DNA of 64,000 nucleotides from Marsupella aquatica (GCA_973895155.1 OZ316899.1:2687455-2751454), one strand, 5' to 3'; counted from the stretch's first letter, positions 16,587-52,862 are shown. The notes: generated from the sequence alone by a model not told the origin. Numbers and translations: made by a program.

Positions 16587-17493
16587 GGGTCATTGTAGCG
16601 TGCGAGGAAACAGTAAAAAAATTCCTCGCACGCTATCATTTTCTCCTTGGAATACCCAAAATTTGGCACGAAAACAACCTCGCTAGCAAAAAGTGACGCT
16701 CGCTAGCCTAAAAGGAACCTTCTATTCCACCTATTTATTTAACTCCCGTTGGGTTTAAAAAGAGATCCCGACGATGCATTGGTACATATTATGTATTCCC
16801 TGGACACGAACGGTCGTCGATGGCACCATAATTAAACATATAATTCTACAGTACATCAGGCCAGCGAAGTCGCTAGCCATAACTCTGCCCATAATTCTCG
16901 CACTAAATACTGCGGTCATGACCCACACGAAAATCACTCATTAGAAATCATGGGTGTAAACCGTTGCAGCAACAACACTAATCCGTATCATATCACGACA
17001 GAATCCAATGTCCCCTTCCTCATGAGTGAAGCGTGAAACGCGAAACCGTTTGAGAGGATCCGAGGCTCCGAAAATGCACTATATGTCATTCGGACCTCTC
17101 GACTCATCTCCATTCCTAACAGTGTTCTCATTATTTGACTTTCATCGTCTCCTCACTCTTTCGTGATCGTTTTTGCATCGCAGAGTAACTTCAATTGAGC
17201 TTGTGTTGTCATATCCGCGGGCGAGGAGGGGATCTGGTGTTCTCGGGTGTGTCGCATTCTTGCAAAGTTTTTGTCGCACAAAGAGATGTAAGTTTGATAC
17301 GGGAAGACCTCTTAACAGCAAATAGTATTATTGTTCATGAGAAAGTCTGGTTTTCCAAGTTCTCTTTTTCCTTCTCTTGGTTTTGCGCATTTTGACTCGA
17401 TCATCTTGGATTTTTTGAATGTGACTGTTTCTATTTGGTAAACACATGTTGAGAAAGTAATCTGATACACAGAAGCGTTTGTTACAGACATAA

Positions 17494-17922
17494 ATGGCAA
17501 AAAACGATGACCCTTCCGCTCCAAAACCCAAATGGGTTCTGGAGGTCCGCCGCTACAACGCCAAAACTGACGGCCCAATGGACTCGCCACCAAGCTCTCC
17601 TCCGGCAAGGAAGAGTGTTACCCCTCCGCTGAAGGCTAGATCATCATCCAGTCGGGTCCCGCCTGTTGCCTCTGCTTCAACTCAGCGACCTGCACTGCCG
17701 AAGGAAACAACTTCAAGCGTTGTTTCCAGAGCACCAATGTCTTCTCGCACAAACGTATCCGTTTCTAAGGGAGTTTCAAAGAAGCGGAAGAGAGAGGAGG
17801 AGGAGTCTTACTGGAGGGACATCGACATACACAACTACTGGACATCCGACATCCTAGCTTTGTTCGATTATGATACGGATTCGGAAACAGATTCAGACGC
17901 CTACAAGGCAACATCTCCATGA
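17494..17922 (+). CDS. Small uncharacterised ORF inside the MULE (142 aa, S/P-rich, basic KKRKR patch, acidic tail)
   Basis: Uninterrupted ATG-to-stop ORF; no recognisable domain. Confidence 0.4.
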   Translation: MAKNDDPSAPKPKWVLEVRRYNAKTDGPMDSPPSSPPARKSVTPPLKARSSSSRVPPVASASTQRPALPKETTSSVVSRAPMSSRTNVSVSKGVSKKRKREEEESYWRDIDIHNYWTSDILALFDYDTDSETDSDAYKATSP

Positions 17923-18808
17923 ATAGTACCCTATACGACAATCACTCCGCGTTGCGAACCCTCGTAGTTTTACAGTTAATCTCTGCCAAGTCCGTGACCT
18001 TAAAATGAAATGATCGGTAGGACACGGACATTTTGTCAGTTACAGATGTTTTGATAAATATTGGACAATATTCGAATAAAGCTTCGGAAGTTTTTTCAAT
18101 TTCATGAGTGCATACCTTGCTAGCGAGATCGCTAGTAAATATTGCCTACTGGTACTTGAGTGATTTACGTTGTGGATGACATGCGAGCACGGAAAACATC
18201 CTCTCTTCCTCCTACTATGATACAGTATCCGACTCTGACTCCGATGCGTACAAGGCAGGGAGCCATTGAATAGGAAACATTTGTAGGGGCATAAACATTT
18301 TGTAGACTGTGTCTATTTCGTAGATCTGGGATCCGAAAAAGTTCTTCGACACTCAATGTCCAACACAGTTGTAAGGGAGAACATCTTTGTTCATTTTGAA
18401 ATAACTTCTTGAGAAGACTGCCGACTGCAATGTTTGGACTTACAGTACTAGTTTTGCTAGCGACATCGCTAGTAAAACTATGCATGACTAAAATGGTTTG
18501 TTTTCTCGAATGTATATCCCAAAAACATTAAAATACATGAGTTATTGAACTCTACGTTATGTAGAACTTGGTCAAAAAGAAACCGTTTACGGGAAACCTA
18601 AAACTTTACTTTACGGGTTTAATACCAGAGACCTCGCTAGAAAAATAAACACTATTTCCGATACGTATAGAATAGTAATAGACCCTCGCTAACATTACAT
18701 ACACAATATAATTAGTGAGGTGGAGGACTTTCCTCTGTTCTGAAAACCAAAAAGGCGACAAAACTAGGGACGCTGAAACGTTCACCTCAACGGATAATAG
18801 AGATTAAG

Positions 18809-21800
18809 TCAACTACACTGCAACGGAATCAAACTCCTTACTTCAGCAACAGTCAGAATTGGCTGCTTCACAAGATCGTCTCTGTCTAGATTCAGTGAGA
18901 ACTTGTTTAAGTACACCCAGAGGAGGTGTTTACAAGACATATAGGGTCTTCCTCTCGTGTGTCTCTTGTAGAAGTCATCACATGAGCAAGAAGGAAAGCA
19001 ACACACTTGGACCCAGTACTTGTGTGCAATTTTCGAATCTGTCTCGTGAGTGACGATAAGATATTGCCATCCCCACCCGTTTCCGAGGCATATCTTCTCA
19101 CTTCCAATGACTCTCATATGTTCGTCAATCGTAGATCGAATGCGTTTGAGAAGCTCCGGGGTGTTCTGGAAACGTTGACGAACGCCTTTCCCATTCCGGG
19201 TCTTGAATCTACGGTTTGGAATACCAATGTCAACTCTTTCTGGGAAGGAGTTCACATCAATTCGGAGGTCAACACGATTTGGAGAGGAGAACGACCCAAT
19301 CGGTGCTGGATCAGAGTATGATAATCCTCTGATTTCAATCCCATTTCGAAGAAGAAAGTCAATCTCTGTTGGGGTCAGCCTGGTCCCACGCTGGACTTGC
19401 AATGCCTCAGGTGGTTCCGGAAGCTGGGCAAGAGTCCTTCTGCCACCTGTTTTATGGCACCTATTATTCGGACAGAAGTATAGAAGCTGACGATGTGGAG
19501 ATGACAACCTCAATCCGTGAATCGCAACACCAACCACTCCAGCCCGGAATGCCTTCATTCCAATTTCTTTGATGAGATTCTTGCACTCATCTCTTCCAAA
19601 CACACTTCGGTCCACTCGTCCATTGCAAACAGGTCCACTCCCTTTTCCACTCCGCCTCAAGTGCCAGGTCCCATATGTCACATCAACCTCTTCAACAACA
19701 GGGATCCTTCGGGGTGCATCCCGAATTTCATCCCGATTATTTTGAGGCTGTGGTATTTCTCCAACGTAGTTCGGGTCCTGTGTTGTATCTCCACGGCTAA
19801 GTTCTTCACCATCATCTGATATATTTATAACTTCACGAGGAAGAGAAGGTCCATGGCAAGTGGGGTTGTCTTCATCGCCAGGAAAGTCTGAAGGTCCACC
19901 AATATCAGAAGCACCGCTGAAGTTACCAAATTCTGTGTAAAGATTTCTTCTTTTCAAACTAGACCGCGATGCCACTGTGCGCAATATCTTATCATGTCTA
20001 TGAGAATCGTTTTCATGAATAGAAGCAGAAGCACTACCCTTCCGTTTCCCTGATGTTGTTCTAAGATCTCCATGTAAAGGCACAGTTCTATAGAACTCAT
20101 ATTTTCCAGATGATTCAAATAGTAGATTGGATGCCTTCTCATAGGCATCCATAGACCCCATTGTATCTGCATTTCTGAAGGCCAGCTCAAATATTGTAGG
20201 ACCATTCCCACGGTGACACCCTTCCAAGTATGCAGTGAACGCTGCAATCTGTCCGGCTGCTCGATTCTGGTCAACTTCACAGGCTTCAATCAAACCAATT
20301 TTCTTCTTCGGCTGGCAGGAACGCATTGATGCGTGAGCAGATTCAGCTCCCGCACAGTTTGGCATCAGAGCAGACTCCTTCGCAGTTTGCGTCTGAAAAA
20401 TGAGCAGAGTTAACACTTGTATTCACTAGCGATATGTCTATTTTGAGACAGTCTAATGTTTCAGTCGGTGACCAAAATACATTTACGAAAAGAAGTTTTA
20501 TTGCTAGCGATCTCGCTAGCTTAAACTCATCAGAAAGAATTCACCGTTACTCACCACACGAATAAAGTTACCCCATTGTCTCCACCGCACAACCCACCAT
20601 GAAATCCACCCTTGTAGTGATTTAAGCTTGGAAGGGTGACAATTCCCCTCTTTCCACCATTTTTGAATGTCTTCGGCGATACGATATGCTTCGACGTATG
20701 TTGGAGCAATTCTTAACTTCTCCCACATCTTATAGTGCTCCGCATGACACCCCTCCTTGATCCCCTCCAAAGTGTGTCTTCTGAGAGATTGAGAGAGATG
20801 GAACGCGTCACTATGCTCTTTCAGAGGATTTTTGACACCTCCAAAAAATACCCTTCTCACAGAAATCCAGCCAGCCTCCGCATTGTCTGCTATGAATCCT
20901 CCAATAATGGGATTATGCACTCCATTAACCTCCACGCAGTTTCAAGCGACTCTGTGTCTTCGGCTCTCAACTCGCAAGTGAAAATTGTACACAGAGCGCG
21001 GTAATTATGGTCATACACGTGTGCGCTGAAGGTCAACCATCCACTAGTGATACGATGCATCACGTCAAAACTGACCCACGAACCTTCCAATGCTCCTCCA
21101 GCCTCCATGCTCCTCAAAATTTCCACACCCGATCTAGGACCATTTGTACTCATTTTGAATACATGCGCTCGATCATTTCTGTTTCCTTGACCGGGAAACA
21201 GGTACCTCTGCACGAAAGGGAAATTGTTACGTGATTGCATTTCACGAAGTGAGTCAAGTTCTCCTTTTTTAGGATTATCCATCTTCACACTCCGAAGAAT
21301 AGCTTGGAACTTTGGAGCGGTAGAAACTACTCCGATCGAACTCCAAATTTCTTGTTGTTCTTCTCTCGACAACTGAGCCGATGATTCTGGATGCAATAGC
21401 GAGACAAGGTTCCCAATTGACTGGTTTCTCAGACGTGCAGGAGTTGAGACTGGATTCAACCGATGGACCCCTAAAACCACATCTTCCGCTATTTTTCTCG
21501 CAGAACGAGATTTTCCCTTCCAAACAGGGTGATCGTGGAATCCCATATGCACAGCCAATCTGGACATATTCATTGAAATGTGACTCTCCAAACCTGGCTT
21601 AGGGTACACATACAACAGTTTTGCCGGGCATTCTCGAATACAGAGAGGCCTCTCTTCACAGAAGCCACAGACAAGTCCTCCCTCACTCACTTGCTCTCCA
21701 AGACGAAAGATGTCAGGCAGCAACCCTTTCCCTTTGAAAGAGCAGTCATTTTTCACTCCAGTATGTTTCAACTTCCGGCAACCCAAATTATGGCATTCGA

Positions 21801-22598
21801 GAATTCCAGCGCAACGAACTTTTGACACAGCCCAATGAAACCTTGGCTTCAAATTCGCAGATGTAGTCACTAGTCTCGTCCAAGGATAGCCGTCCTTCTC
21901 TCGATCCATATCTTGGAGACCTCCTCCCCTCCCGGCCCCCTCGACTGGAGGAAGTTCAAAAACAACGTTACCATTGTATGTCGATGGCAGAGTCGAAACC
22001 TGACATTCATTCCATTGATTCCCTCTTCTAAATTGTGCAAGTTCACTCGCTCCACTGATATTGAGAAAAGCGTCATAGGCACTCATCCGATACACTGTGG
22101 TCATGCTATCCCCAGTCCTTTCAATTAAATTTGTCGCTAACCCTTCGGGTTCGGAACCATCTCGTGACTTCATCGAACCACAAGATGTGTCTTGCCTTAT
22201 ACTCTCTGGAGATATTTCAATGACCTCGGGAGCTCTGTCTTTGGGAGGCGTCCAAGATCAATCATAGGAGTTTGATGACCGGGATCTAATTCCATGGGTT
22301 CCAAAATGACATCAGGAAAATCATCTTTACTGGACAGAACCTCGACACAAGATCCAACCTTCAGCGTCCATACCTTCCCGGAAGTACTACTGTCCTCTCT
22401 CAACTCGTGACTCCTTGGCCCATTTTGAGAAGACAACTCAAACAACTTCATGACAAGGTCATCTTTTGGAATTCCAAAACGAGTTGCAAGGAATGACTCT
22501 GTCACCCTAACCTCCGACGAGTCAGGGGCACTTGGGAGTACCACCATGTCTCCCGTCATTCTACGCTCCAAAACCACCTTGGAATTCATCGTCATCAT
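18809..22598 (-). pseudogene. MULE transposase with WRKY/GCM-like Zn region, DDE core and SWIM finger
   Basis: FELPP...YPWTRLVTTS...CAGILEC; SFDVMHR (D1); FIADNAEAGW (D2); DAFH; AESAHASM (E); SWIM CSCDDF...CKHLLWV. Frameshifts near 22200 and 20930. Intron at about 20395-20550. Confidence 0.85.
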
Positions 22599-23261
22599 CT
22601 CTTCTCAACATACAAAAATACAACGACTATGTTTTGAATCGCACATATGAATCCTATTTGCAGGACCAAAACTGGGTTTTTCCCAACGGAAACAACAATC
22701 CAAAAAGATTGTCAGTCGATTCCCGTTGATTTTACCATTATTTTGTCTTTTACTCAACGTATAGGGACGTCTCTCATGCTAGCGATCTCGCTAGCTTGGT
22801 TTTGATAGTTTTATGGAAAGAAAATCGTTGATTTCAACTCTTTTAATGATACCTGTGTCATTGAGTTTATGCCAGCGATCTCGCTAGCCAAAAAGTCAAA
22901 CTGATTTTTGAGGAAGTTTACCGTTAGGATTCCGTTGGGAATAGTCAACCGGTACCATAATGTCAACGGTACAACTGGAGTATTATTTCTGGATAAGATT
23001 ATCGGTCGTGAAGGTTGTTGTTTGGGTTTTCCAAAAAGTACAACTAGTGGTCCCTGCCAGGAGATTTTTGTTATTCCTTACATCATACTGTCGATCATTG
23101 TCAGTATTCACTATCGTAACTCTGTAAGGCTTCGGAGGGAGTTCGTAGCAGTTTGTACGGCGTCCTAATTCTCCGAAAGGAGGTGCTCTGTGGACGTTTT
23201 TGACGCGTGCAGCCGCTGTAGTCTCCGGGCTCGAGCACTCTTCTCCAAAGGGTTTTATTTC

Positions 23262-26200
23262 ATGGAGTCATCCTTGTCTCCAGAGAGTATTTCTTCGAGA
23301 GGATCGTTTCAGTCGAGGGAGTCGACAAGGAGAGAAACTAGGTCCACAGCGAACAAGAAAGCGCTTGCAGCGGGATTGAAGACTCCAAGGCGGGCCAAGA
23401 TGGTGACAGCGGTAGATGTAGTTGCTCCTATGTTTGATCCGAGCGCTTCGGAACCTTACACGGTTGTCATAAACCGTCATCTTCACTCGTTTGGAGTGAA
23501 TGAGTTCGGATTTGCATTGGCTCCCCCCCGAATTCCTCTGTGCCGGATGAGAAACATGCAGATTGTCCGGTCTCTGCAGAAGGATTCCACTGCGATAGAC
23601 ACATTGAAGTCCGAGTTCAAAACGCAGGGTTACATCGAGGATGCGCCTCAATTTTACGTTCAGATGACAAACGAGGATGGAGAAATCCAGATCTGTACAG
23701 ATGCCATCCGCGAAACTTGGGATGATATTTGGGTGTTGCAAAACGAGGAGTTTGAGCGCGAATGTGATTCTCATGTTTCTTTCCAGATCCTCAAGGACAA
23801 AATGTTCTGTGTTTTCGATGGAAACCATCGATTGTATTCGTGGAGCCAACTGGCAGAGGAACATCCGGATGATATTAAGTACCATCCTCGAGTGGTCTGC
23901 AAGATCTTTAAGGGTGAAAAGAACTCTTTCGTTCAGATCGAGTTGGCTATGCACGCATTGAACAGGTGGGACTTCTCATGATAAGATAGTTCTGAAATTT
24001 CATTTTTACCGAGTCACTTTCAGCTAGCGATCTCGCTAACATGAGGCATGTTGTGGCAGGTTAACTCAATGTCATGTAGAGAATTCCTGGGTTTTGGAGG
24101 CTGAACGCGTCCAGAAGATTCTGAACAATGACTTATCCGTTTACAAAGATATCATCGACGCTGAGAATTACAAACTTTTCCAGCAGAAGATGGCCAATGT
24201 GCGAAAGGCCGCATGGTATTCGAAGAACATGACGCTGGATGCCTGCACTTATATTCTATCCGCTGCTAACATTGCATCGCAGACCGAGGACCTTAAGAAG
24301 AAATTTTCTCTTAAGGAGGCTCAAGGCGAGCCCCTTTCCAAGGCTGCACAGGACTTAGCAATGCGTGACATGATGAAAGAACAACTTGCTGATTGGAATG
24401 TGAAAGTTCCAAAGATCGGTCCATTACTAAATCCTGAGTTTGGAGACTTTTTCAAGAAATGTGTCGAAATGCATAACTACTGCGAGAACAAGAGAAAGGA
24501 GGCCCAGAGAACAGATGACAAAGGCAGGGGAAATGTTTCTTGTGGTCTTGATCGAGCTCGATTGTTCACTGGTGTGACCTCTTTATCCCCAGAGCTCCGA
24601 TGTACACTCCTGGAGGCACAGTGTTGTCCTGAGCTTCGGAAAAAATTCTTTCATCCAGGTCAATTCTCAGATGGTGAGACTAAGCTTTGGCTTCATCGTT
24701 GGGCAGTGTGGGAGCAAGTCGAGTCAATTTCGTCTTCCCTCATGTCTGAAATTGTTTCTGAGGTAATGCATACTATCCCTGAGTCGAGGATCCTTACGTC
24801 TTCAGAGAAGACGAAAGCTTCGCTAATCCTTGACATTGAGGAGGATTTTGAGGATTTCCAAACTCGTGTGAAAACTCATTTTTTCAAGCAGATTTGGCCA
24901 CCCAAGACAGGAGAGAAGGTAGACATTACATTGTTTCGGAGGAGAGCGAAGAGATACACGTATCGATTTTTTGTAGACAGAGAAGTAGCAGACAAATTTT
25001 ACTGGTGGTCCTACCCAGCCTGTTTCTCCCCATGGATAGCTGGGGTTAAAGAGGACCCTACAAGTGATAAGTTTGGGGAATATTGTATGTTTCCTTGCGA
25101 GGGAAGTGAAGCTCCAAGGAGATTGAGCGAGTGGGAGGTTCTTCATTGTCCATGGTATTTGGACTCGGACAAATGGTCTGTGACATTTGACACTGCAGAG
25201 AAAGCAGCTCTTCACATGATCAATCGAGGATTCCTTCCGGAATCTTACATCTCCGAGTCCAAATTGGCACCCACTGATGCTGAAGTTGGTGGTTGCGAGG
25301 CGATGGAAAAAGCTTGTCTTGGTGTAGCTGCCATAGTGGATAGGAGTCGAGCACGGAAGCCAAGAAAAGGAGCATTGAAGGACACATCCAAAGATGGGTC
25401 CCAGATTTCCGGAAAGCCAAGTAAGTCTGTTAATTGTATGTTACTTTTTATTTTTAAGTCCGGATGTGTGTCGAATATACAGACACTAATGTCTTTTGCT
25501 TCACAGAGAGGAGGAAGGGAGCGGCTTCTGAGAGTTTGAAGAGTGGAGCAGATGATGGTGAGGAACCTCAGTCCCCAGATGCCGAAGTCACAACAAAGAG
25601 CGCAGTGGATTTAGGAAGTATAAAACGTTTGAAACGGAAGCGGAACATCCAGATTCTTTCAGATTCGGACGATGAGGAAGTTTCAGTTGCTCAAGGTGTT
25701 GCTCGGATGTGTGGTTTGAAGATGGATGGGCAGCGACATTTCCTGGCTCGTAGCAATTTGACCGATACTGCAAACTCAATTAGCGTAAGTAAAGTGAGGC
25801 CATCTTGGATGGGAGATGGAGATCGATGGATTACTGGGATGTCAAAGAGCGTAGAGTGCCCGAACCATGTCGTAATTAATGGAAAGCCTTATGCTGGGAT
25901 TGGAGCACATTTGGGATTCATTTCTCTTCCAACTGGGCATAGAACAAGCGTTACAGACAAACAGGTTCCGTCTTGGAATGTTTGGAGCGAGAAACTCCCA
26001 TATTATTTTTTTGGAGTGATGAGACCAATGCTTTCAGATGATGGATATGTTGCTGTCTTGCACAGCTCAGACTTCAATCACATGAGGCAAATATTTACGG
26101 CAGTCGAGCAAAAAAACAAATTCAAACATGTGCAGCAATATACCATTTTGTTGTCCACCCCTTTATGGAGGGCAGATATGGATATTGAGGTAGTTATCCC

Positions 26201-26878
26201 TTGAATTTCTTGAGAGTTTTAATGCTAGCGATGTCGCTAACAAAATTATAATTTTCAGCTACCAAACATATCTGGTTTATGTGTTAATTTTCTATTTTCC
26301 GACTAAGTTAATGCTAGCGAGCTCGCTAACAAAGTTAGCATTGTTTCTGGTGTATTTTGGTTTTTATGCAGGTGTGCACTCTCATCCTGGATGTTTTTTG
26401 TCGGGTGGAATTTAGTGCAAAGATTCCTAAAGACCCAGCGTATGTTCCATTGACGTCTTCGGAAGATGCAAGACATAAGTCAATGTTGAGTGTTTGTTAC
26501 CCTAAGACTGACCCCTGTCCAGAAGCGGCTGTTGCTGGATCAAAAAGGCTTTCAATTGGGTTCATGCAAGCCGTGATGGAATTCCTCACGAAGCCCAGAG
26601 ATATAGTCCTTGACTAGACTGTGTGTGACGGTAGCTCGTTTTTTGTCGGAGAATTCTCCGGGAGATTTGTTGTCGGTGTTGAAGACAGGGACATTCTCCA
26701 TTGCTGTGCAGAAAAAACTTTAAACAGTGTTCTGGCGAGGCATTCGAGCAAGGCAAAGCAGATTAGGGATCAGCCAGCCAAGGTTAATCAAGACGCTGGG
26801 TCGGATGATGAGTTCACGATTCCAGGGGATGAACAGGCTGGGCCTTCAAGCGAGAAAGACAAATTCGACCTGGAGTAA
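23262..26878 (+). CDS. MULE cargo gene: ParB/Srx-like N-terminal domain plus C-terminal beta-class N4C/N6A DNA methyltransferase-like fold (about 1085 aa; one in-frame TAG)
   Basis: Exons 23262-23965, 24060-25420, 25507-26189 and 26372-26878 splice in frame at GT-AG. Motifs FCVFDGNHRLYSW (about 23800-23845), HLGFISLPTG (degenerate motif IV position) and KRLSIGFMQAVMEFLTKPRDIVLD*TVCDGSSFFVGEFSGRFVVGVED (motif X/I/II pattern). TAG at 26615-26617. A further 3' exon (26913-27320) is possible. Confidence 0.7.
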
Positions 26879-38544: not shown

Positions 38545-39370
38545 TAGCCCTAAAATCCTTTATTACTAAATATCCAGACGTTGGATAGGGATGATCCCTG
38601 TCCAAATAGTGGATAGGGTCACTATCCAAAATGGCAGATAAAGATCATCCTTGTCCAAACAACGGATAGGGATGATCCCTGTCCAAATGAAGGATAGGGT
38701 GATCCTTGTCCAAACAACAGATAGGGATGATCCCTGTCCAAATGGCGGATTAGGTGATCCTTGTCCAGGCAGCGCATAGGGATGATCCCTGTCCAAATGG
38801 CTGATATTGATGATCCCTGCCCAAACGGCGGAAAGGGATGATCCCTATCCAAATGGTGGATAGAGATGATCCCTGTTCAAATGGCGGATAGAGATGATCC
38901 CTGTACAAATGGCGGATATTGATGATCCCTGTCTACATGATGGATAGAGATGATCCCTGTCCAAATGGTGGATAGGGTTGATCCCTATCCAAATGGCGGA
39001 TAGAGATGATCCCTGCCCAAATGGCGGAAAATGGTGATCCATGTTCAAATGGTGGATAGAGATGATCCCTGTCCAAATGGCGGATAGAGATGATTCCTGT
39101 CCAAATGGTGGATAGAGATGATCCCTGTCCAAATGGCGGATAGAGATGATCCCTGTCCAAAAGGCCGATAGGGATCATCCTTGTCCAAGTGGAGGATAGG
39201 GATCATCTCTATCCAAAAAGCTGACATGGACAATCCAAGTATGTAGACGTGAATCTAAAGATAGTAAGATCCATGTCCAAATGGTGGATAGGGATGATCC
39301 CTATCCAAACAGCTGACAAGGACAATCCAATTATTTAAGTAAACTTGATCTCTAGACAATAAGATCCCTA
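38545..39370. repeat. 28-bp tandem array (atggcggatagagatgatccctgtccaa) between the transposase and the cargo gene
   Basis: About 20 degenerate copies of a quasi-palindrome GGATAGAGA-TGA-TCCCTGTCC. Confidence 0.9.
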
Positions 39371-40459: not shown

Positions 40460-41040
40460 ACTGGACAAAGATCATCCCTATCCAGTTGGATAGAGATGAT
40501 CTCTATCCAAGTAGAGGATAATGATAATTTCTATTAGTAATTCGATACGGATCATTCCCATCCTCTCTATGGATAGAGATCATCCCTGTCCAGTTGGATA
40601 GAGATGATCTCTATCCAAGCATAGGATAGTAAAGTTCAATAGAGATGTTAGTAATTCAATACAGATTGTTAACATTCTCTACCTTGATAGAGATCATCCC
40701 TGTCCAATTGGATAGAGATGATCTCTATCCAAGCATCAGCTAGTAAATTTTGATAGAGATGTTAGCAATTCAATACAGATCGTTAACATTCTCTACCTGG
40801 ATAGAAATCATCCTTGTCAAGTTGGATAGAGATGTTAGTAATTCAATAGTAATCCTTGTCCAGTTGGATAGAGATGATCTCTATCCAAGCAGAGGGTAGT
40901 GATGATTTGTATTAGTAATTGCATATAGATAATTCCAATCCTATGTTTGAAATCATCTCTGTCCAGTTGGATGGGGATGATCTCTATCCAAGGAAGGGAG
41001 AGTGACCTCTAGTCAAAATTGATAGAGATCATCTCTGTCC
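40460..41040. repeat. Intron-1 array (about 110-bp units) with the perfect palindrome TTGGATAGAGA-TGA-TCTCTATCCAA
   Basis: Exact copies at 40486-40510, 40594-40618, 40708-40732 and 40864-40888. Confidence 0.9.
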
Positions 41041-42729
41041 AAACTTATAGAGAACCCCAAATTTCCAGTGACAAAACTAATAATTATGCATGGTTGTGGC
41101 AATTGCAGGAAGTACTCTCAATGCATTGAAACCACCAATTTCAGAGGCAGATTGTTCTGAGGGAGTCTTGCTTGAGCAGAGCAACCCAAACTTCCGTTGG
41201 GGCCTTGAGTTCTCCAGAGTTGATTTTGATTATCTTAGCACAACAAAGAGACAAGAACCAGTGTTGTGCATAAAGGTCAGAATGTCAGAAGGAGAGACTC
41301 TTGTAATTGGACTTGTAGTCTTCGTTGGAATTGAAGGAAGAGGATTTGTTTCAGTCATTCTTGAGCTCCATGAAAGAATAAGGTGGGTTAAACTTCATCT
41401 CCCATCAAAGGCGTATTCCTCAGAGTTCAATATCAAGTGGTCTGCAGCTGGAGAACTTGGCATGTTGTCAATGGGATTTTTCCCAAAATCATATTCAGCT
41501 CAGAAAGTGATTGCAAGAGTGAAGGGGATTCTTCCACCCGACCTCATGTATGGGTTCCAATATGTGAAGCTAAATATCCATAAAAACCAAGGGAATTATA
41601 CAATGTCGGTGACATGGATTTTAAATAATCTGCTCGACAAGGCAGGTTTCCTATCTTCAGAGTTAAGTGTTTGGCTTGATAAGAGCATTGCATTTGATGA
41701 GGAGTTTGTGATGGATAATGCAAAAAAGTGGACAATTCACTACCCAAGCCGATGAATGTTCCACCGGTAGCGGTGAACAAGCTTCCACCTGTAGTTGTTA
41801 ACACGGAAGTTCCCAAGCCACCAAAAGTATCCCAGGAGACAACAGGGACCGCAAGAACAACAGCTGGGACCGCAGGAACAACAGTTGGGACAAGCACCAA
41901 AAGAGTGGTAGGGAGGCAAAGACAAGGAGAGAGCAAGGAGCACGAGAAAATTGAGACACTGCCAAAGGAACCCGAGAAGAAGCCAATAGGGAAGAAGAAA
42001 TAGAAGACTGACAAGTCTATCGTGCGGTCAACCCCTGCGGAAGTACAGATGCTCCCAGAAGATGAGGGAGACAAACTTGATGCCCGTGAGGAGAAGAAGG
42101 TCTTAGAAGGAAATGATGTTCTCCAGAGAATAGAGCAGTACTATACTTTTGGTATAAATGAACTGTTTTCTATTCCAGTGGAGAAAATTTTGCCTGCACC
42201 GGCAAGATTATGTTATAGGATGCTCAATAGTACCCATGTGAAGCACATAGCCAAATCCATGGTCAAAAACCTTGGACATGAACCTCATGTCGCGGACCTG
42301 CTTCCTTACAATCCGAAGCTTAGAAAGTTGCTCCATTTTGACAGCACGGAGAACGACTGCAAAGACTTTCTTGCAGGTGTGAAGAAAGGCGAGATTGGCT
42401 TCTTTGCCATCAGTGGGCAACATTCGGCTAGGGCGGCCAAGTGGGTTCTCAAATGGGCCAAAATTGATGCCAAGTTGATAGTATTGGCAAAAAAGTTAAA
42501 ATACAGGAAGTCTAGATTATTGTCAGACCTTACACCATCGGCTATATTGGTTGAGCACTCAATGAGATCAAATGCCATCAATTCAATGATGGTGTTTCAA
42601 AGATACAATTGTTCATGCAAGGAAACAATTCCTTGAATGCGGAGCACCAAGAAAGCCAAAGCACGGGGATAACAAGTCAAATGCCCAAGACAATCAGAAA
42701 TTTCAGGTGAGAAACGCTTTTCTTGTTTG

Positions 42730-43220
42730 GAGAGAGATGGTCTCTATCCAAGAGTATGACCGTCCGCTACATTGATTTTAGTTCAATATATTTTTGATTA
42801 TGACTTGGATGGAGATGGTCTCTGTCCAAGAGTGAGACCGTCCGTTTCAAAGATTTTACTTCATTCTACTTTTGGTTTTGACTTGGATGGAGATGGTCTC
42901 TGTCCAAGAGTGTCACCGTCTGTTCCAGAGATTTTTCTTCATTCTACTTTTGGTTTTGACTTGGATGGAGATGGTCTCTGTCCAAGACTGTCATCGTCCG
43001 TTCCATAGATTTCTCTTCATTCTACTTTTGGTTTTGACTTGGATGGAGATGGTCTCTGTCCAAGAGTGTCATCGTCCGTTCCATAGATTTATCTTCATTC
43101 TACTTTTGGTTTTGACTTGGATGGAGATGGTCTCTGTCCAAGAGTGTCATCGTCCTTTCCATAGATTTCTCTTCATTCTACTTTTGGTTTTGACTTGGAT
43201 GGAGATGGTCTCTATCCAAG
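42730..43220. repeat. Intron-2 array, 6 x 78 bp, each unit with TTGGATGGAGA-TGG-TCTCTGTCCAA
   Basis: gacttggatggagatggtctctgtccaag recurs with a 78-bp period from about 42802 to 43220. Confidence 0.9.
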
Positions 43221-43247
43221 AGTGTGAATTTTGGTTAATTTAGATAA

Positions 43248-43433
43248 TGTTAGAATATATTTAACCCTTAGCCCATATGATACAAAGAGGTATGCAATAC
43301 CTAGATATAAAGAGACACAAGACTAGGAAAGGGTAGTTACAACTACCCCAATGTACAACATATAATAAGCCACATTGGCTTAAGGGAATAATCAATCATC
43401 TTTGTTGGTGTATATACATTTCATAACTTAACA
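43248..43433 (+). repeat. Copia 5' LTR
   Basis: tgttagaata...cataacttaaca. Confidence 0.97.
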
Positions 43434-43591
43434 CGTTATCAGCACATGATTTTGCTCCTCCAACAACTCTCGAGCTACTCATAGGCCTCTTGTGAATTTC
43501 TTTTTTCTGTGAACGAAGCATCGAACGAAATTCCCCAAGACACATTTTTTCTTTTCTTTCGCCAAGTACACCACAAAAATTTTCATCGACT

Positions 43592-46500
43592 ATGACTACA
43601 TTGGAGAAGCTCCAATTCCCATTGCTCACAACAGATGGCGACAATTATTTATCTTGGGCACATAATACAAAAATTGTTCTCAACATGAAAGGCCTCGGCG
43701 ACATTATCTTAGCAGATATCAATGGCACATTACAACAAAAGGCTCAGGCACTATATATCATTCGCCATCACCTCGCTGCCGAACTACAACTTGAATACCT
43801 TACAGAGTTTAATCCTCGAGTCCTATGGGATGCTCTCAAATTGAGATTCGACCATCTGCGTCTAATTTCCCTACCAGATGCACGAAATGAATGGATTCAT
43901 TTACGAGTTCTAGACTACCCTACAATTGCGAAATTCAATAGCGCCTTATTTCGGATAACTGCTCAGCTAGCAGCCTGCGGCGAACCAATCGATGAAGCAG
44001 CAAAGATCGAAAAGACTCTTTCTACATTCTCGGCAGCGAACATGCAGTTATCACAGATTTATAGACAACGCCATTTCACCCAATTCTCAGATTTGATTGC
44101 AGTCATGCTCCTGGCTGAAAAGAATGACCTCCTCCTTCTGAGGAACTCTCGCGAGCGACCACCAGGCACGCTTCCTAAACCGGAAATACAATTCATGAAT
44201 ACCAATAGAGGTAATTCCTCTTACAATCGACCTCGTGGCCAATTTAAAGGCAATCCAAGTCGTTTTAATCAATTCCACAAGAGACAACATTTTCGCACAG
44301 ACAAAGGCAAAAACTTCAAGCCTCTCATGAATTCTTGGTATCGTAACCCCAACCATATGCCAAATAAACCTGCACAGAATTACCCCACAAATAATCAGCC
44401 CAAGTGTTTCCGTTGCGGTGGGATAGGGCATATCCAAAAGAATTGTAGAATTCAAGCTCACCTAGTCAAACTATACCAGGCCTCCCTCAAAACATCCAAC
44501 ACCTTAACAGCCGCACATCACTTGGAGATTGATGACGATCTCTCCAAATATACGCTTGCACCTCCCCCACCAGAGGTCCATATAATATCACATGGAGTAA
44601 ATGACACATCTCTCGCCGGTGCTGATATTTGCATTCTTGACAGCGGCACTTCTCACTCCATCCTAAAAGACAAATGTTATTTCCAGCACATATACCCATC
44701 AAATAGACCTGTGACTACTATCACAGGTATAAACCAATTAGAGGAAGGCCATGGACCTGCCCAACTTACCCTTCCTCAAGGCACAACCATTAAAATTGCA
44801 TCTGCCATATATGCCCCACTCGCGACACGAAACTTACTAAGTTTCCATGATGTCCGTCAAAACAATCTCCACATACGCTCTGCACCCAACAACCACAGAA
44901 ACTCTCTACAGATTTTTCGAGAAACTGATAATGGCCCCATCACAGTACTAGAGACATTACTACTCCATCCCCCCGGCGTTTATGCCACTAAGATCATGTC
45001 TTACAATTCCCAACGACAACAATTATCCCCAACAGAATTATGGCATATCCGCCTAGGCCACCCAGGCCCAGGGATGTACCATAAAATTATGAAGAACACC
45101 ATTGGCATACCAAAAGGAGTACACCCATCCACGAAGTTAGACACTTGCATCCCCTGTGCACAAGGCAAATTTATCACTCATCCAGCTTCCACTAAGAACA
45201 CCTATCAAATCCCTGACTTCCTCTCACAGATCAATGTGGACGTCTGCGGACCTATTGATCCACCGAGTGGACCATTTAGGTTTTTCCTAGTAATGATCTG
45301 CTCCTCAACCAAATGGTCCTCTGTTTCTTTAATTTCCACCAGAAACCTTGTCTTTGCCAGACTGCTAACACAGCTTATACGTCTTCGCACTCAATTCCCT
45401 GACTCTCCTACCAAAATAATTCGAATTGATAATGCTGGCGAATTTACATCACCAGCATTCGATGACTTCTGTCAAGTCCTGGGCATCACAATTCAATACT
45501 CAGTACCATATGTACATTTCCAGAATGGTACTGCAGAGGCATTAATAAAACGTTTACAGATGATCTCAAGACCTATGCTATTACAGACACAACTCCCACT
45601 TACAGCCTGGGGACATGCTATACTCCATGGCGCTGCACTAGTGCGATATAGACCATCGGCTTTTAATATTTACACACCACACCAACTAGCATATGGCTCT
45701 ATACCAGATATTACACACCTGAAAGTGTTTGGCTGCCTTGTTCTGGTACCCATTCTTGGCCCCAAGCACACCAAGATGGGACCACAGCGTCGACGTGGCA
45801 TCTATATTGGCTACGACTCTCCCTCGATAATAAGGTATCTCGAACCCACCACTGCTGATGTGTTTCGAGCTCGATACCAGGACTGTAAATTCTGTGAAGA
45901 CACCTTCCCAACACTTCTAACTCCAGCACAACTCTCCAAACAGCCTGTCTCAACACACACATTAGACTGGACAACAAAGGATCCATTCTAGAATGATCCT
46001 CGTACTCAATTGACAAACGATGAAGTGAAACGCATTCTGAACCTCCATCAAATTATGGAGAAAATACCTGACGCATTTAATGATGCTACAAATGTAACAA
46101 AATCACATATAGATGCAGCCAATACTCCTGCGAGAATTCATATACCAGATACTCGAGCCACAGACCTCGCTCCCAAGGCTAAGCGAGGCAGACCTTCAGG
46201 TTCCAAAGACTCTAGACCACGGCAGAAGACACCTGTATCAACACATTTATCCTTACAATTACCGCCAATTATACAAGATGACAATGAAGAAATATCCATC
46301 CACTATATGCATACTGGACATTTATGGCATCGAAATTTAACTGAACCAGATGAGCATTTTGCTTTTCTTATATCCCAGGATATAACTAAAGATTTACCAG
46401 AACCCCGGACAATTAAAGAAGCACAACAACGACCAGACTGGCCCAAATGGAAATCTGCTATTAACTCCGAACTTGATTCTCTGATATCTCGCCAAGTTTT

Positions 46501-48267
46501 TGGAGAACTCCGAATCATCCCTGCTGCACAACACCTAACTGGGTATAGGATTATATTGATACGCAAACATAATGCCGCAGGTGAAGTAATCCGCTATAAA
46601 GCCAGACTCGTGGCTAGAGGCTACACGCAAATATATGGCAAAGATTACGACCTTACTCATTCACCGGTCATGGACTCCATTACCTACCGATATCTGATTG
46701 CTTTTCCCTCACACATCAAATTCGTATGCATCTAATGGACGTGGTAACTGCTTACCTTTACGGTATACTTGATACTGACATACAAATGCAAGCTCCACCT
46801 GAATTAATTCAGAGGGTAATTTTCCACATTAAGGGGGAGCATACAACCTCCCCAACCCCGGACCTAAAGTCGGGTATTGATAAGATTGTCCCTACACAGG
46901 ACTTTAAGGACCATCTCATTCACTCAGGCCAGATGATACCTACTGAAATACATGACTCATCAGCGGTCCAAAATAAAAAGGCCCAGCAAATTGCTAGTGG
47001 TGAACAGTCAGCGGATTCACCATTGAATTATACTGACTTACTCGCTGAGGTAAATCCTGTTCACCACAGAATCAATAAAGCCAAGAAATCAGAGAAAGCA
47101 TTTGCTGTACAGGTTCTTAGGTCACTCTATGGTTTAAAGCAGAGTGGCCGCATCTGGTATAAACGTTTCCGTGCAGAGATGCTTGCACTTGGTTTTGTGA
47201 ATGAGGACATTGCCCCTTGCCTTTTTATCAAAAGACATGGCACTGAATTTATAATCATAGCCATATATGTCGACGATATTAACCTAATGGGTACTAAACT
47301 CATTATGGATCAAACCATTACCACACTTAAGAGCATATTTGAAATGAAGGATATTGGTCAACCCCTATTCTGTATTGGCATTCAATTTGAACATTTATCC
47401 AGCGGTATTCTTATTCATCAATCTACATATACCAGAAAACTATTAAAACAATTCAACATGGACAAAAGCTATCCAGTCACGACACCTATGGAAATTCGAT
47501 CTTCAGACACATCCAGAGATCTGTATAAGCGCAGGACCGAACACGAACCAATCTTAGGCCCAGAGAAACCTTACCTCTCTGCTATAGGAGCCTTGATGTA
47601 CCTGGCGAATCAAACTCGCCCAGACATCTCTTTCGCTGTCCACTTGCTTGCTCGACACAGCTCCCAACCGACTATTAGACATTGGAATGGCATTAAGAGG
47701 ATACTGCGCTACCTTCAAGGTACAATCGATACTGGCCTCTATTACCCTAAAGATGTGCCTAATGAATTGATTGGTTACGCAGATGCAGGTTACCTTACAG
47801 ACCCCGATGATGCGAAATCCCAGACGGGATATGTATTTCTACAAGGACATACAGCCATATCATGGAAAAGTACCAAGCAAACTTTGACGACCACATCCTC
47901 CAACCATGCGGAAATCATAGCACTATACGAAGCTAGCCGAGAATGCCTGTGGCTTCGACAGCTTATCAATCATATCCAGTCGTCTACAGGCCATGCAATT
48001 CTTACCAAGCCTACTATCATCTACGAGGATAACAACCCTTGTGTTGATCAGATAGTTAAGGGCTTCATCAAGGGCGATCGAATCAAACATATTGCCCCCA
48101 AATTTTTCCACACGCATGAACAACACGGGGACCAAATCAACGTTCAATGGATACCTTCTAAAGATAATCGCGCTGACCTTTTTACAAAGCCCTTACCTCG
48201 CATTCTCCACGAAGCGCATTCGATTGGAATAGGACTCCGTAGATTATCGGACTTCACTGCAATCTGA
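43592..48267 (+). pseudogene. Copia gag-PR-INT-RT-RH polyprotein with one stop (45989-45991) and one frameshift (about 46715)
   Basis: DGDNYLSW; CFRCGGIGHIQKNC; ILDSGTSH; LWHIRLGHPG; IRIDNAGEF; KMGPQRRRGIYIGYDSPSIIRYLEP; YKARLVARG; YVDDINL; GYADAGY; IIYEDN. Confidence 0.95.
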
Positions 48268-48576
48268 CTTTTCCACCTCTTCCACGATACCTCCTCTGTT
48301 CTATGCATATTCTACTGAACGTATGTTCTCCATACTCGAACATTTCGACACATCCTATCAAACACTCGTTTAGATTTAGCCATACATGATTACACTCCTT
48401 TCTTACTAGTTTTAACTCATTACATGTAAGGTAGTGACACTCTTTTTACCCCAGAAGAAAGCAGGGGGTTTTTAATGAGGTCATACCCCAATGAGTTTTT
48501 CCATTATACTCAGAACTAGACTTAAATTTATTTCCTAAATGGTTACTTTAAGAAACATAAAGTAACCAAGGGGGAG

Positions 48577-48762
48577 TGTTAGAATATATTTAACCCTTAG
48601 CCCATATGATACAAAGAGGTATGCAATACCTAGATATAAAGAGACACAAGACTAGGAAAGGGTAGTTACAACTACCCCAATGTACAACATATAATAAGCC
48701 ACATTGGCTTAAGGGAATAATCAATCATCTTTGTTGGTGTATATACATTTCATAACTTAACA
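48577..48762 (+). repeat. Copia 3' LTR
   Basis: Matches the 5' LTR base for base by eye. Confidence 0.97.
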
Positions 48763-51322
48763 GATAAATCTATGGAACATTCCCCCCAATTTTTGATTGC
48801 AGGATTATTTGGCATTGGCCAGGATGACCATGGGGAGAAAAGACTTGAAAAATGTTTACTAGTTGCTTTTTGCCGAGAATGATTTTTGAGTTATGGCGGT
48901 TAGTGTGCCAAATGTGGATTGACGGAAATCTTCCCGATGGAGCTGGTACACAAGGAAACAAAAGGTCCGAAAATGCGATAACGGTTGCAATGTTTCATTG
49001 TTTTGATGGCGAAATCTCAAATAGAGATTTGACCAGAATTTTGAACAAGGTGAAGTCAGGTCAAGATTTATTGAAGAAGGATCCGACAAATAAGTCAGAT
49101 GTTCCAGCGATAGAGGAGTTTGCAAAGGAGGTGAAGATATTGATCAAATTGAAGTCTGTTATTGGAGATTACTACTTCAAGAAGGATCCAAATAACTTCC
49201 CAGCAGACACTCAATGGGTTAAAGTAATTGAGGTCCTCCCATTGTTAGGTGCCAAGTCGGAGTTGAACAGGTGCCGAAGAGCGGCTGGTGAAGTATGGTT
49301 GACAAATTTATTGAAGTCTAATCATACAAAGGAGAGTGAGATATTGCCAATGACATTGGTGATGCGTCTAGATGATATTTACTGTCAGAAGTTTGGCGGT
49401 GGGACAAGTTCTCGGACTCAGCCATGGGTCACATTTTTTAGTAACAACCTAATGAAGACAGTGGATCCGGAGTCGTTGGAAGAACAATCTCCAACATGCC
49501 CTCTTGTGATTGTTGATTTCAGCCGACTTCAACAGAAGGAGTGGATTGAAGCAGAAATTGTGGTCCTCTTCCAATATATAGTAGAGCTACCACGGAATCC
49601 CACCATCGTTGTGATGATAACTGTCCATCCGGGTTATCTTGTACTGAATGTCCTAAGCGCTCTTTGTAAATTAGGACATTCAAGAACTTTGAGCATTCAC
49701 ATTGAGTATGGGAGTTATTATCAAGATGATCAACCTCACCCTCATGACTCATGTTGGAAGGGAGGAATAGAAGAAGTTATCTTTGCCAAAATTTCTCGCA
49801 AACAAAACGTCAGTTGGGATGAAGTGTTCAAGCCCAACCAAATGAAGCCAAAATGGGTGTATGGTGAAGAGGATACTGATTTTGTGGTCGAGAAGATCAA
49901 AAGGAATGGAACGGCAAAGGGAAAGGACACGGACGAGGAGTCAATGAATGAAGATCTACGAAATGTGGTGACCCCAGAAGAGGCGGCAATACTTCTGCAC
50001 ATGGCACCTCAATTTGAGACTGTTGGGGCTCGTAGTGGATGGGTGAATCCTCATGCCAAACCCATCCCAATGATCCAAAAGATCATCAAACATTATCCAA
50101 ACCAAGGGATTTGATTCTTGACTTTTTCTCTAGTGGTCAAGTGATGAAGACATCCCTTTTTTCTCAACGTGAATGTTTTGTTTGTTGTGACTCTCAACAT
50201 GAGAGACATTTTGTGGAAGCATACGCTTCGTTCCTTTTTGAGAGGGTTCCCACCATCAAAGATCGTTATGATCGCTATAATGTCGGTGGAAGTTTTAGAC
50301 ATTGGGAACCCTCTTCTGCCGCTGTTGCTGTTGATGATGAATCAAATGGTGATCAAGAAGATGGAGCTGACCAATCAGTCAAAGGGGATGGGCCATCAGA
50401 GGGGGCATATGTGAAGAATTTGGATGACCGAGTTGGCGAGGGTGAAAATATTGACCCTGTGGAAGACGATATGATTGTTGGATTTGCACCTTGTAGTTCA
50501 CCAATTACAGATGTTGCCCCCATGGGCCCCAACGAGGGCCAGGTTGATGATAACTTGGATAGAGATGGTCTCCATCCACAAGTGCCTGGACAAGAGATGG
50601 AGAAGATGAGAGAATCAGAAGTTGATACATTTGAGAAATTTTCTTCAAACAACCTTCTCAATCAAGGTGCAGAGAGGCATGGTGAGTCCAATGAACTTGA
50701 CACATTGGGATTGAGACCAGAGACCATCCAAGTACCTGACATTCCCGTGAATGAAGCAAGTGCATCCACGACTGCTGACAACCAGGCAGGTGCTTCAATT
50801 TGTCCTGATACACTCTTTTTTGCTTCTGATGGCAAATTAGTGTTTGTTCGGTCACAATCAAGAAGTCCTGTTATCCTTCCACTCTCAAAAAAGAAAGGGA
50901 AGAGAGTAGGATCAACGGGATATAAGTCACTTGAATATGATTGTCGATGTTACGTGTGGAAAAGTGGACCAGATGTAGGAACCAAAGTACCGTTGGATGC
51001 TGCTCAATCAATTTTGAACAATGACTCGTACAAAAAGCAAAAAGAGATCCAGCTTATAGAAGCAAAGAATTGGGATTGATAACTCCAGTTTGATCTGCAC
51101 CTTATTGAGAGTACCTCTGATGTCAACTATGAGATCCAACAGGAGCTTGGTGATGATATCTTGATTGATGAATATGGATCTCATTGTTAGCCAAGGGCTT
51201 ACTAAGATTTAGCCATGTGATCTTATCAATTTGATATAATCTTAATAGTCTGTATAATTATACTTCAAGCCTAACAATTAGAGCATCAGTATCAATATCC
51301 ATTTCCTCTTTACGGTTTCTCA

Positions 51323-52110
51323 ATGAATACGGTCAGTATGCATATTTTCTTTGTGGTTGGCCACTTGTGTTTTTGGATTGAGACCATCTCTATCCAAACT
51401 TCAAATGTGTTTTTTTCTCTAAGATTGGTATTTGTTGCACTTGCAGAACCAAGACCTTGTTCCATCAAGCGCAAAATGCTGATTTTGGATCTTAACAAAA
51501 TACTTTGGGATTCGGTTGAATTCCAAAGCAAGGGCAAATCCAGAAATGTTGTGACCCCAAGTGGAGTGCATTGGGATAGAAAAAATGGAATTAGTCGCAT
51601 GTATACAGAAAGGCCAGGGCTCCACGAGTTTCTAAAGTTAGTTTTTGACCGATTTGATGTTGCAATTTGGACATGTGCTGGGATACAACGAACAGTGAAA
51701 ATGTTGAACATGATGTTCACTGCTGAGGAGCGATTGAAACTTAAGTTTGTATTCACATAGGTGGAAGCCTTTGACATAGGCATTCAAAGGCGTGACATTA
51801 CAAACGGAAAGGCAAATGTGCTACTGAAGGATGCCTCGTGGATGACTCCCCCCTTAAGGCATTTGCCAACCCAAGCATGACCGGACTATTTCCAGTGCCC
51901 TACACGCATGCCAATCATGGAGATAATTTTCTTCTAACAATTCTTTGGCCTTGTCTTGAGAAATTATCACATGCAAGTGACATTAGATGTTATCTTCTTC
52001 TGAATTCTCCATTGTGGTCTCTATTGCACATAAAGAGAGACAAGGTAAAAAATGAAATTACTTATGATCAACTTAGTAAGAGATGTGCAACAAAAAGTTG
52101 GAAGTCATAG
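51323..52110 (+). pseudogene. FCP1/NIF-homology HAD phosphatase-like cargo gene
   Basis: KMLILDLNKIL...ERPGLHEFLKLVFDRFDVAIWT...DDSPLKAFANP. Stop at 51758-51760 and a frameshift or deletion near 51835. Confidence 0.75.
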
Positions 52111-52709
52111 TTTACGCATAGTGTGTTGGACCTCAATAGCAATGAGATTCCTTGGAACGTGAAGCATCGTATATGTAGTTTACGTCATGAGGCAAAACTT
52201 GACGATGCACTTGTCATCTCACTTGCTAAAGCATTTGTAGGACGGGACTATGGGTCCATATAGAGAAAATCCCAGACACTTTTTGCGGGAGACTATAGCC
52301 ATTAGGAACAACACCACCAAGTTTCAGCTCCCTGAAAATAAAGAGACTTGCAACCATGACAATAGGGTAGATAGTAGAGGAGACAGGGGCACGTGCTCAA
52401 ATACGCATTGTAAGAGCATTTTATTTAGAGATCTGACTCATGTTAAGCCCTTTAGATAGAAGAAATACATTGTAAATTGTATATTGTATATTATTTTATA
52501 ATCTATTTGGAGAACTTGTGTCCTTTTGTTCACACATTATCAAGGGTATTTGGGCTTCTTTGTGCTGAAATGTTTTTATAAGTATCATCTCAATCCTACT
52601 ATTCTTTGTGAATTAATAAATAATGATCTCTATCCTATTATTCTTTGTGAATTAATAAATAATATAATATGTATTGTTTATTAATATAATACTAATATGA
52701 TTTGGCCTA

Positions 52710-52812
52710 TAAAGTGTACATTTAGGGACCAAAAAGTGTACATTTGGGTTTCTTAAAGTGTACATTTGGGTTTCTTAAAGTGTACATTTGGGGACATGAA
52801 AGTGTACATTTC
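52710..52812. repeat. Right subterminal AAAGTGTACATTT motifs of the Sola1-like element
   Basis: Five copies just inside the right TIR. Confidence 0.9.
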
Positions 52813-52862
52813 AAGACTGATTTGTGAACAAAAGAAAATACACTTTTAATGAATAGGCTGAT

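Follow-up and report, generated by a model that had tools for sequence, protein, structure and literature searches.

Two unrelated DNA transposons in Marsupella aquatica carry accessory genes with ParB/Srx-like and methyltransferase-like parts and are interspersed with element-specific palindromes

What does a gene with a ParB/Srx-like and a methyltransferase-like part do inside a DNA transposon, and why are there two such genes, in two unrelated transposons, in one stretch of DNA? This question is raised by 64,000 nucleotides from Marsupella aquatica (GCA_973895155.1, OZ316899.1:2687455-2751454), a stretch that is called the window below. It is eukaryotic DNA rich in transposable elements (TEs), with a GC content of ~43%, and the closest named relatives of its proteins are found in the liverworts Calypogeia fissa and Riccia sorocarpa. 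Two of its elements, E1 and E2, share one layout, with a transposase on the minus strand and a divergently oriented cargo gene on the plus strand, and each is interspersed with a palindrome of its own. In both families, the accessory gene appears to encode a ParB/Srx-like domain, a long helical region and a circularly permuted fold of a beta-class DNA amino-methyltransferase (MTase). Few accessory genes are known from eukaryotic DNA transposons, and these are poorly understood. Our tentative answer, which we hold with a little less than even confidence, is that the cargo protein binds the palindromes and serves its element as a regulator or self-recognition factor.

Both elements are genuine cut-and-paste transposons. 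The boundaries given for them in a preliminary description of the window proved to be exact, as target site duplications (TSDs) and terminal inverted repeats (TIRs) are found at both:

16587-27684: E1, a MULE-like element bounded by a TSD and TIRs
16578-16586 (left) and 27685-27693 (right): 9-bp TSD of E1, AGGAGTAAA
16587-16613 (+) and 27658-27684: TIRs of E1, imperfect, 21 of 27 positions matching
34471-52862: E2, an element with a DUF7869-type transposase, bounded by a TSD and TIRs
34467-34470 (left) and 52863-52866 (right): 4-bp TSD of E2, TAAA
34471-34496 (+) and 52837-52862: TIRs of E2, 25 of 26 positions matching
34506-34815 and 52676-52832: subterminal AAAGTGTACATTT repeats of E2

E2 splits an open reading frame (ORF) of a gypsy-type reverse transcriptase (RT) into two parts (34300-34470 and 52867-53482), and its excision in silico, together with one TAAA, restores a continuous gypsy-type RT frame, which is equivalent to an empty site. 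The restored frame keeps one stop (..QTVKNK*PLPHMDD..). That the two transposases are unrelated was borne out, as no similarity between them is detected by blastp. Going beyond the preliminary description, E2 also holds a nested Copia retrotransposon and a third, NIF-like gene, and both window copies are dead pseudogene copies because of a stop codon, frameshifts and the nested Copia element.

The ParB-MTase-like genes are true transposon cargo. Had they been single-copy host genes, the idea of a transposon module would have fallen, yet they are present in multiple copies and lie inside TSD-flanked elements, and the whole layout is found again in C. fissa. Both architectures recur there at protein identities of 23-61%. 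The C. fissa locus L008 shows the E1 layout, with a transposase (-) that is 39-53% identical and all five exons of the E1 cargo gene (+); the left end of this MULE was looked for and not found. Locus L009 shows the E2 layout without the Copia element, with a transposase that is 37-61% identical and with subterminal repeats, transposase, N-terminal exon, ParB exon, MTase exon and NIF gene in this order; its TIR core is the same as that of E2, and it possesses a 4-bp TSD of its own, CATA. In four public runs, 557-1541 contig pieces of 90-100% identity lie over the E1 spacer and the E1 cargo gene (22600-27400), and the gene is accordingly repeated to the same extent as the spacer beside it. More distant relatives are suggested by AlphaFold DB clusters that include proteins of 706-1005 residues in which the ParB-like part comes first and the MTase part last; among them are A0A388MEC1 and A7RT40, which we take to be from Chara braunii and Nematostella vectensis, respectively. 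A7RT40 (714 residues) matches both the ParB-like and the MTase-like models and bears the name "translation initiation factor 5B", probably a mis-annotation of the ParB-MTase-like family. The MTase-like model is also matched by A0A388L0S8 (900 residues), whose name, "Reverse transcriptase Ty1/copia-type domain-containing", may reflect a transposon fusion.

The cargo gene of E1 (cargo 1) was divided into five exons by homology, using homologues of ~43% identity from four assemblies:

23262-27320 (+): cargo 1 gene, predicted protein of ~1,150 residues
23262-23969 (+): exon with the ParB/Srx-like part and the motif DGNHRL..W
24052-25425 (+): exon with the helical region
25458-26198 (+): exon with the N-terminal half of the MTase part, SLPT at the motif IV position
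26360-26851 (+): exon with MTase motifs X and I
26615-26617 (+): in-frame stop inside motif I, where the homologues L001, L002 and L003 have Trp
26982-27320 (+): last exon

The ParB-like exon of cargo 1 has 20 database relatives, and DGNHRL is invariant across 23 sequences. An alignment-based model of this domain reaches a predicted local distance difference test score (pLDDT) above 90, and its top PDB matches are nearly all ParB, Noc, KorB, Srx or other proteins of the ParB/Srx fold. Foldseek gives a probability of 0.97 with weak E-values (best 0.08), and the comparison is close in geometry (VIA: Z 8.4, root-mean-square deviation 2.4 Å over 92 residues). A ParB/Srx fold is thus supported by the model for cargo 1; the preliminary description had assigned such an N-terminus to both cargos, and for cargo 2, the cargo gene of E2, it is suggested by motifs only. 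A PDB profile search with the ParB exon returned nothing, and two cargo 1 homologues match DUF1015 at 2e-4. A Gly-x-x-Arg motif of the phosphate-binding type (GERR, GGCHR or DGQHR type) can be read as DGNHRL in cargo 1 and as SGQHSA(R/Q)A in cargo 2. For the MTase part of cargo 1, a profile of the last large exon matches M1.HpyAVI/DpnA at 1.7e-5, CcrM at 0.04 and PF01555 at 1.7e-5, the latter under the Pfam threshold. Motif I is DWxxGxG in the homologues, and in the window copy it is a stop followed by CDG; because of this stop, the window copy of cargo 1 is a pseudogene.

Cargo 2 is longer in genomic extent and is interrupted by the Copia element:

41090-51079 (+): cargo 2 gene, spliced, predicted protein of ~1,100 residues
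41090-42772 (+): 5' part, with the N-terminal exon (41090-41755), a basic linker and the ParB-like exon (42022-42636)
48852-51079 (+): 3' exon with the helical region and the predicted beta-class MTase fold; frameshift at ~50090-50126, judged against three intact homologues

Its ParB-like exon reads IPVE..CYR.. and AISGQHSARAA, and these motifs are kept in the loci L007 and L009. A full HMMER search with the 420-residue cargo 2 exon found 64 relatives; one cargo 2 homologue, P0022, passes the PF01555 gathering score, and three others (P0005, P0012 and P0008) are just below it. The cargo 2 family profile matches M.RsrI at 5e-6. The MTase model of cargo 2 (pLDDT 85) resembles CcrM, M.BceJIV, M.PvuII, M1.HpyAVI, M.RsrI, M.MboIIA and the rotifer N4CMT (8s9m) with Foldseek E-values of 1e-8 to 1e-5 and template modelling scores, normalised by target, of up to 0.72, and a phage cluster of ParB_N plus N6_N4_Mtase proteins is among its structural neighbours. 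In this model the Rossmann order is permuted, motif IV preceding motifs X and I in the chain. A beta-class amino-MTase fold, as the preliminary description had read it from motifs, is supported by the model for cargo 2 and by profile matches for both cargos. The ORFs of the window themselves give no Pfam match to an MTase family.

It is doubtful, however, that these folds methylate DNA. The motif IV consensus (D/N/S)PP(Y/F/W) is absent from the plus strand of both cargo genes, and motif IV, the strand of which was located by its position in the model, is replaced in every member of both cargo families. The position is occupied by [S/A/Y][L/T/F]PT in 7 homologues of cargo 1, with P and T invariant, and by (L/I/V)DF[S/T/A/G]R in most aligned homologues of cargo 2, the window copy of which reads LVIVDFSRL. 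Motifs X and I of the cargo 2 family are NPxAKP...GDTVLDFFSGGQ (NPHAKP..KPRDLILDFFSSGQ in the window copy), and motif I is DFFSGGQ in comparison to the FxGxG pattern of S-adenosylmethionine binding. Judged by these motifs, both MTase folds look like pseudoenzymes: the fold presumably no longer methylates, given that the motif X/I block has been kept but motif IV is replaced in all members. The earlier suggestion that the cargo marks DNA by N4-cytosine or N6-adenine methylation therefore finds no backing in the catalytic motif.

The preliminary description had also stated that the two cargo proteins differ greatly, and this is indeed the case. In a blastp comparison of the ORF pieces, a 10-residue KPRD(I/L)(V/I)LD match (E 0.06) was all that was obtained, and hhalign, run on profiles of the ParB, middle and MTase regions, put the probability below 1% each time. 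A close common origin of the two genes was considered and is unsupported, with sequence and profile-profile comparisons non-significant in all three regions. Their kinship seems to be confined to fold and domain order, which fits independent capture and very old divergence alike.

Each lineage possesses its own palindrome of 20-24 bp, scattered through introns and spacers. In the window these are as follows:

16862, 18121, 18458, 20505, 22780, 22873, 24025, 26226 and 26315 (span 16862-26328): palindromes of E1
22599-23261: intergenic spacer of E1, flanked by the divergent genes and containing the palindrome GCTAGCGA-NN-TCGCTAGC twice (22778-22795 and 22871-22888)
38525-41040: spacer of E2, with arrays of the E2 palindrome in units of 28 nt (38548-39322) and of 114 nt (40426-41003)
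42649-43247: 78-nt tandem array in the cargo 2 intron, in which a variant of the E2 palindrome is contained

The nine E1 palindromes are of the type TAGCGA-NN-TCGCTA, with the full form TTGCTAGCGA-NN-TCGCTAGCAA, and none of them lies in coding sequence, three cargo introns and the spacer being among the places where they occur; 0.02 would be expected, and none is found in the window outside E1. The E2 palindrome, GGATAGRGAT-N-ATCYCTRTCC (21 nt), has ~40 sites in three arrays and as single copies and is likewise missing from the rest of the window, so the motifs are element-specific, as had been claimed. It differs from the subterminal AAAGTGTACATTT repeats, and E2 therefore possesses two separate sets of cis-motifs.

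Outside the window, TAGCGA-NN-TCGCTA occurs 13 times in the C. fissa MULE, despite a protein identity of only 33-53%. Two other cargo 1 loci have GGCTAACGG-NN-CCGTTAGCC instead, 8-9 times each; the version in L002 and L003 is GCTAACGG-NN-CCGTTAGC, at matching non-coding positions. In the C. fissa counterpart of E2 (L009), the palindrome is GCCTCGAGA-NNN-TCTCGAGGC and is found in the spacer, in the intron between the ParB and MTase exons and just before the NIF gene, which matches the places in E2; in the form CCTCGAGA-NNN-TCTCGAGG it also stands at non-coding positions that match E2. Three of four palindromes at L009 7895-7960 and 12878-12920 are flanked by TGGTAAGT, which resembles the 5' splice-site consensus. 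A perfect E2 palindrome at 37357-37377 lies within the N-terminal transposase ORF, where it encodes VDRDDLYP, and ORFs across the 28-nt arrays encode similar peptides (DRDHLYPPFGQGSS); a coding segment may have been the origin of the E2 arrays, or the arrays that of the segment. A Riccia sorocarpa locus (L010) was considered as a further cargo 2 locus and rejected, as it holds duplicated fragments of the cargo 2 helical region only. Around these fragments, at 6882-13463, there are ten copies of TCTGTTTACG-NN-CGTAAACAGA, a third lineage-specific palindrome in a degraded relative.

How could these parts work together? The domain order is that of phage ParB-methylase fusions, which would likely be the ultimate source of the cargo genes. 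The dead MTase fold could have been reused as a DNA- or cofactor-binding module, and the cargo protein would then bind, probably as a dimer, the 20-24 bp palindromes of its element in introns, in the intergenic spacer and, for the MULE, in subterminal regions. Its role would be to regulate the element or to recognise it as self, comparable to that of En/Spm TnpA or VANDAL VANC. The retained fold with its motif X/I block, the ParB-like domain and the lineage-specific palindromes are what suggests to us a co-evolving pair of protein and recognised DNA. The occurrence of the module in TSD-flanked elements with lineage-specific non-coding palindromes also fits another part of the preliminary description, by which the cargo loads onto or recognises the element's own DNA. 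A more far-reaching version, which we consider unlikely, is a eukaryotic analogue of ParB-parS inside transposons, in which a ParB-like domain with a nucleoside triphosphate (NTP) switch and a dead methylase would read the palindromes and load onto, spread along or bridge the element's own DNA. Such a system may control the chromatin state of the element, the excision complex or the retention of an excised copy; the module would have been recruited by at least two unrelated transposase superfamilies and, judging by the structural look-alikes that possess both domains, may be widespread in eukaryotes.

Several points weigh against palindrome binding by the cargo. The link between the cargo protein and the palindromes is one that we infer, and no helix-turn-helix or other DNA-binding domain was identified in the cargo. 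The ParB-like domains of both cargos fail to match Pfam PF02195 (ParB_N, ParBc), a match that the preliminary description had envisaged, or a member of its clan; for cargo 2, the ParB assignment comes from motif reading only. The middle region of cargo 1 (~450 residues) gave zero matches in the PDB profile search. The loss of catalysis is likewise judged from motifs alone, and unusual active sites exist. Exon-exon joints were not found in the contigs of the public runs, which behave like DNA assemblies. Furthermore, the sequence of the E2 palindrome is not kept in the C. fissa copy, and E1 half-sites (TCGCTAGC) adjoin both ends of E1 (16680, 16700, 16870 and 27642), where the transposase could bind them.

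This last point leads to an explanation that is possible, if on the unlikely side, namely that the palindromes are transposase sites, promoter elements, short hairpin repeats that multiplied within the element or features at the RNA level, and that the cargo is a passenger that does something else. Like DndB or the DUF262 domain of GmrSD, it might be an NTP-dependent nuclease or sensor, or its function might be directed at the host. Half-sites beside both TIRs are what transposase sites would look like, subterminal repeats are frequent in cut-and-paste transposons, and the E2 palindrome is also found inside the transposase ORF, at 37357. The DGNHR of cargo 1 resembles the DGQHR/DGQQR of the ParB-like domains in DndB and DUF262 proteins. 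However, E2 already owns a separate set of subterminal repeats, and in several lineages the palindromes lie within cargo introns and change together with the element lineage. A second alternative, which we regard as less likely, is that the cargo is an active N6-adenine or N4-cytosine MTase with an unorthodox site, whose self-mark on the palindromes or their flanks blocks silencing or times transposition. The beta-class fold is complete in the cargo 2 model, the motif X/I block is kept, with GxG in the cargo 1 homologues, and the palindromes hold cores that resemble restriction sites (GCTAGC, GAGCTC and CTCGAG), as such enzymes read; working beta-class N4-methylcytosine (4mC) writers of bacterial origin are also present in Marchantia (bioRxiv 10.1101/2021.02.12.428880) and rotifers (PMC8885841). 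Against this stands the replacement, in every member of both families, of the very motif that binds the target amino group in beta-class enzymes, as well as the degraded motif I of cargo 2 (FFSGGQ). It is very improbable that the whole arrangement is accidental, with host genes or fragments of other elements caught by chance inside two transposons. In its favour, the window copies are both broken, and E2 does accept nested insertions such as the Copia element, but an accident would not explain why C. fissa shows the order and orientation of the genes and the TIR core once more, together with a TSD that is independent, or why the cargo 1 region is repeated to the degree of the E1 spacer next to it.

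The remaining genes and neighbouring features of the two elements are the following:

18809-22598 (-): MULE-like transposase of E1, ORF pieces 22197-22598, 20890-22173, 20516-20935 and 18809-20416
35051-38426 (-): DUF7869-type transposase of E2, ORFs 35304-35810, 36073-36867, 36874-37200 and 37191-38210
43248-48762 (+): Copia long terminal repeat (LTR) retrotransposon, nested in the cargo 2 intron inside E2, with a 5-bp TSD, GATAA
51323-52414 (+): NIF/FCP1-like gene of E2 downstream of cargo 2, with a phosphatase-like fold (PF03031, E 2e-7, above the cut-off)

The transposase ORFs of E1 have no Pfam match even at E 10, including the MULE DDE family PF10551. A SWIM-like CxC-x16-CxH motif (CSCDDFYKRHTRGRPYMSCKH) can be read at the C-terminus of the ORF 18809-20416, which the Pfam SWIM family does not match, and the nearest named Atlas language-model clusters are MULE, ZSWIM RNaseH-like and FLYWCH, with scores of 0.84-0.90. 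Because of the 9-bp TSD, the SWIM-like motif and these language-model neighbours, it is reasonable to call E1 MULE-like, but this is not proven. The frame of this transposase is broken near 20923-20953, where the C. fissa copy has a single ORF. For E2, the DUF7869 match is weak in the window ORFs and reaches E 4e-40 in the C. fissa copy L009; no mention of DUF7869 was found in the literature. The N-terminal transposase ORF of L009 (4094-5284, -) contains two Transposase_23 (TNP1/En/Spm) repeats, which hints that, in transposases of the E2 type, a catalytic core of the DUF7869 kind could be combined with a CACTA-like module for DNA binding. The Sola superfamily of Bao, Jurka and Kapitonov (2009) reportedly has a 4-bp TSD, as is found with TAAA in E2 and with CATA in L009; E2 resembles Sola in this respect, and its transposase itself was matched to DUF7869 alone.

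The nested Copia element is young. Its LTRs are 186 nt long, 100% identical and end in TG..CA, it has long gag-int and RT-RNaseH ORFs, it adjoins the 78-nt tandem array, and it is missing from the C. fissa counterpart of E2. The window copy of the NIF/FCP1-like gene has frame breaks near 51825 and at 52250-52293, and such a gene is also found downstream of the cargo at L005 (3183-4154), L007 (3934-4977) and L009 (12952-14088). At the DxDx(T/V) site, the window copy and L009 have DLNK and L007 has DCNG, so that the second Asp is absent; all three enzyme-like domains of the DUF7869 element carry non-canonical catalytic motifs. A 20-nt GGACTATAGTCC array to the left of E1 was considered as subterminal repeats of the MULE, which is ruled out by the TSD and by the continuation of the array at 27685-27870. 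This array (15576-16586 and 27685-27870) is the insertion target of E1 and not part of the MULE. In it, AAGGACTATAGTCCTT palindromes alternate with AAGGAGTAAAGTCCTT units, and it may represent the subterminal region of yet another element.

If palindrome recognition by the cargo holds true, the module would be a device of a new class, present in two unrelated superfamilies, by which a transposon recognises itself or counters silencing. The two families also document a phage-type ParB-methylase architecture that has become established and has diversified in the genomes of land plants, and this bears on the origin of the bacterial-type 4mC methylase in liverwort sperm. If its catalytic motif is dead, a DNA-methylase pseudoenzyme would join the enzyme folds that are reused as readers.

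No earlier description of a ParB-MTase transposon module was found in the searchable literature, but several known systems share parts of it. For the ParB-like exon of cargo 1, the language-model neighbours that come closest are DUF3723 clusters, the models of which resemble ParB and DndB; DUF3723 is a recurrent accessory gene of the fungal Starship elements (bioRxiv 10.1101/2021.12.13.472469). Starships use tyrosine recombinases, unlike the elements described here, and the DUF3723 likeness is one of language-model neighbourhood. We know of no MTase fold that was reported together with DUF3723. The Dam-LTR retrotransposons carry an alpha-class Dam with a preserved catalytic pocket, which was transferred between element classes (bioRxiv 10.64898/2026.05.21.726589). 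As in these, a prokaryote-type DNA methylase fold has been recruited by eukaryotic TEs, whereas the fold of the cargo would be beta-class, has lost motif IV, is fused to a ParB-like part and resides in DNA transposons. Marchantia DN4MT1, also from a liverwort, and rotifer N4CMT belong to the same class of MTase fold, and they differ from the cargo in being active host genes; to our knowledge, neither is associated with a ParB domain or a transposon context. DN4MT1 has no extra domains (PMC8885841).

The closest likeness in domain architecture is found in the phage and plasmid fusions of ParB_N (PF02195) and N6_N4_Mtase (PF01555), which combine the same two folds in the same order, and a tblastn search of phages with the cargo gave weak matches to motifs X and I only. 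Unlike these fusions, the cargo genes are eukaryotic, spliced and ~1,100 codons long, with a helical insert of 200-450 residues; their motif IV is lost and their ParB part too diverged for Pfam, and they sit in eukaryotic DNA transposons with palindromes of their own. In element organisation, the likeness is to En/Spm TnpA, MuDR MURB, VANDAL VANC and the Harbinger Myb-like protein, where an autonomous cut-and-paste element likewise combines a second, divergent gene with element-specific short motifs. The protein folds are unrelated to these, however, and the cargo module spans two transposase superfamilies, and the motifs found here are perfect palindromes of 20-24 bp that are present in introns as well as in spacers.

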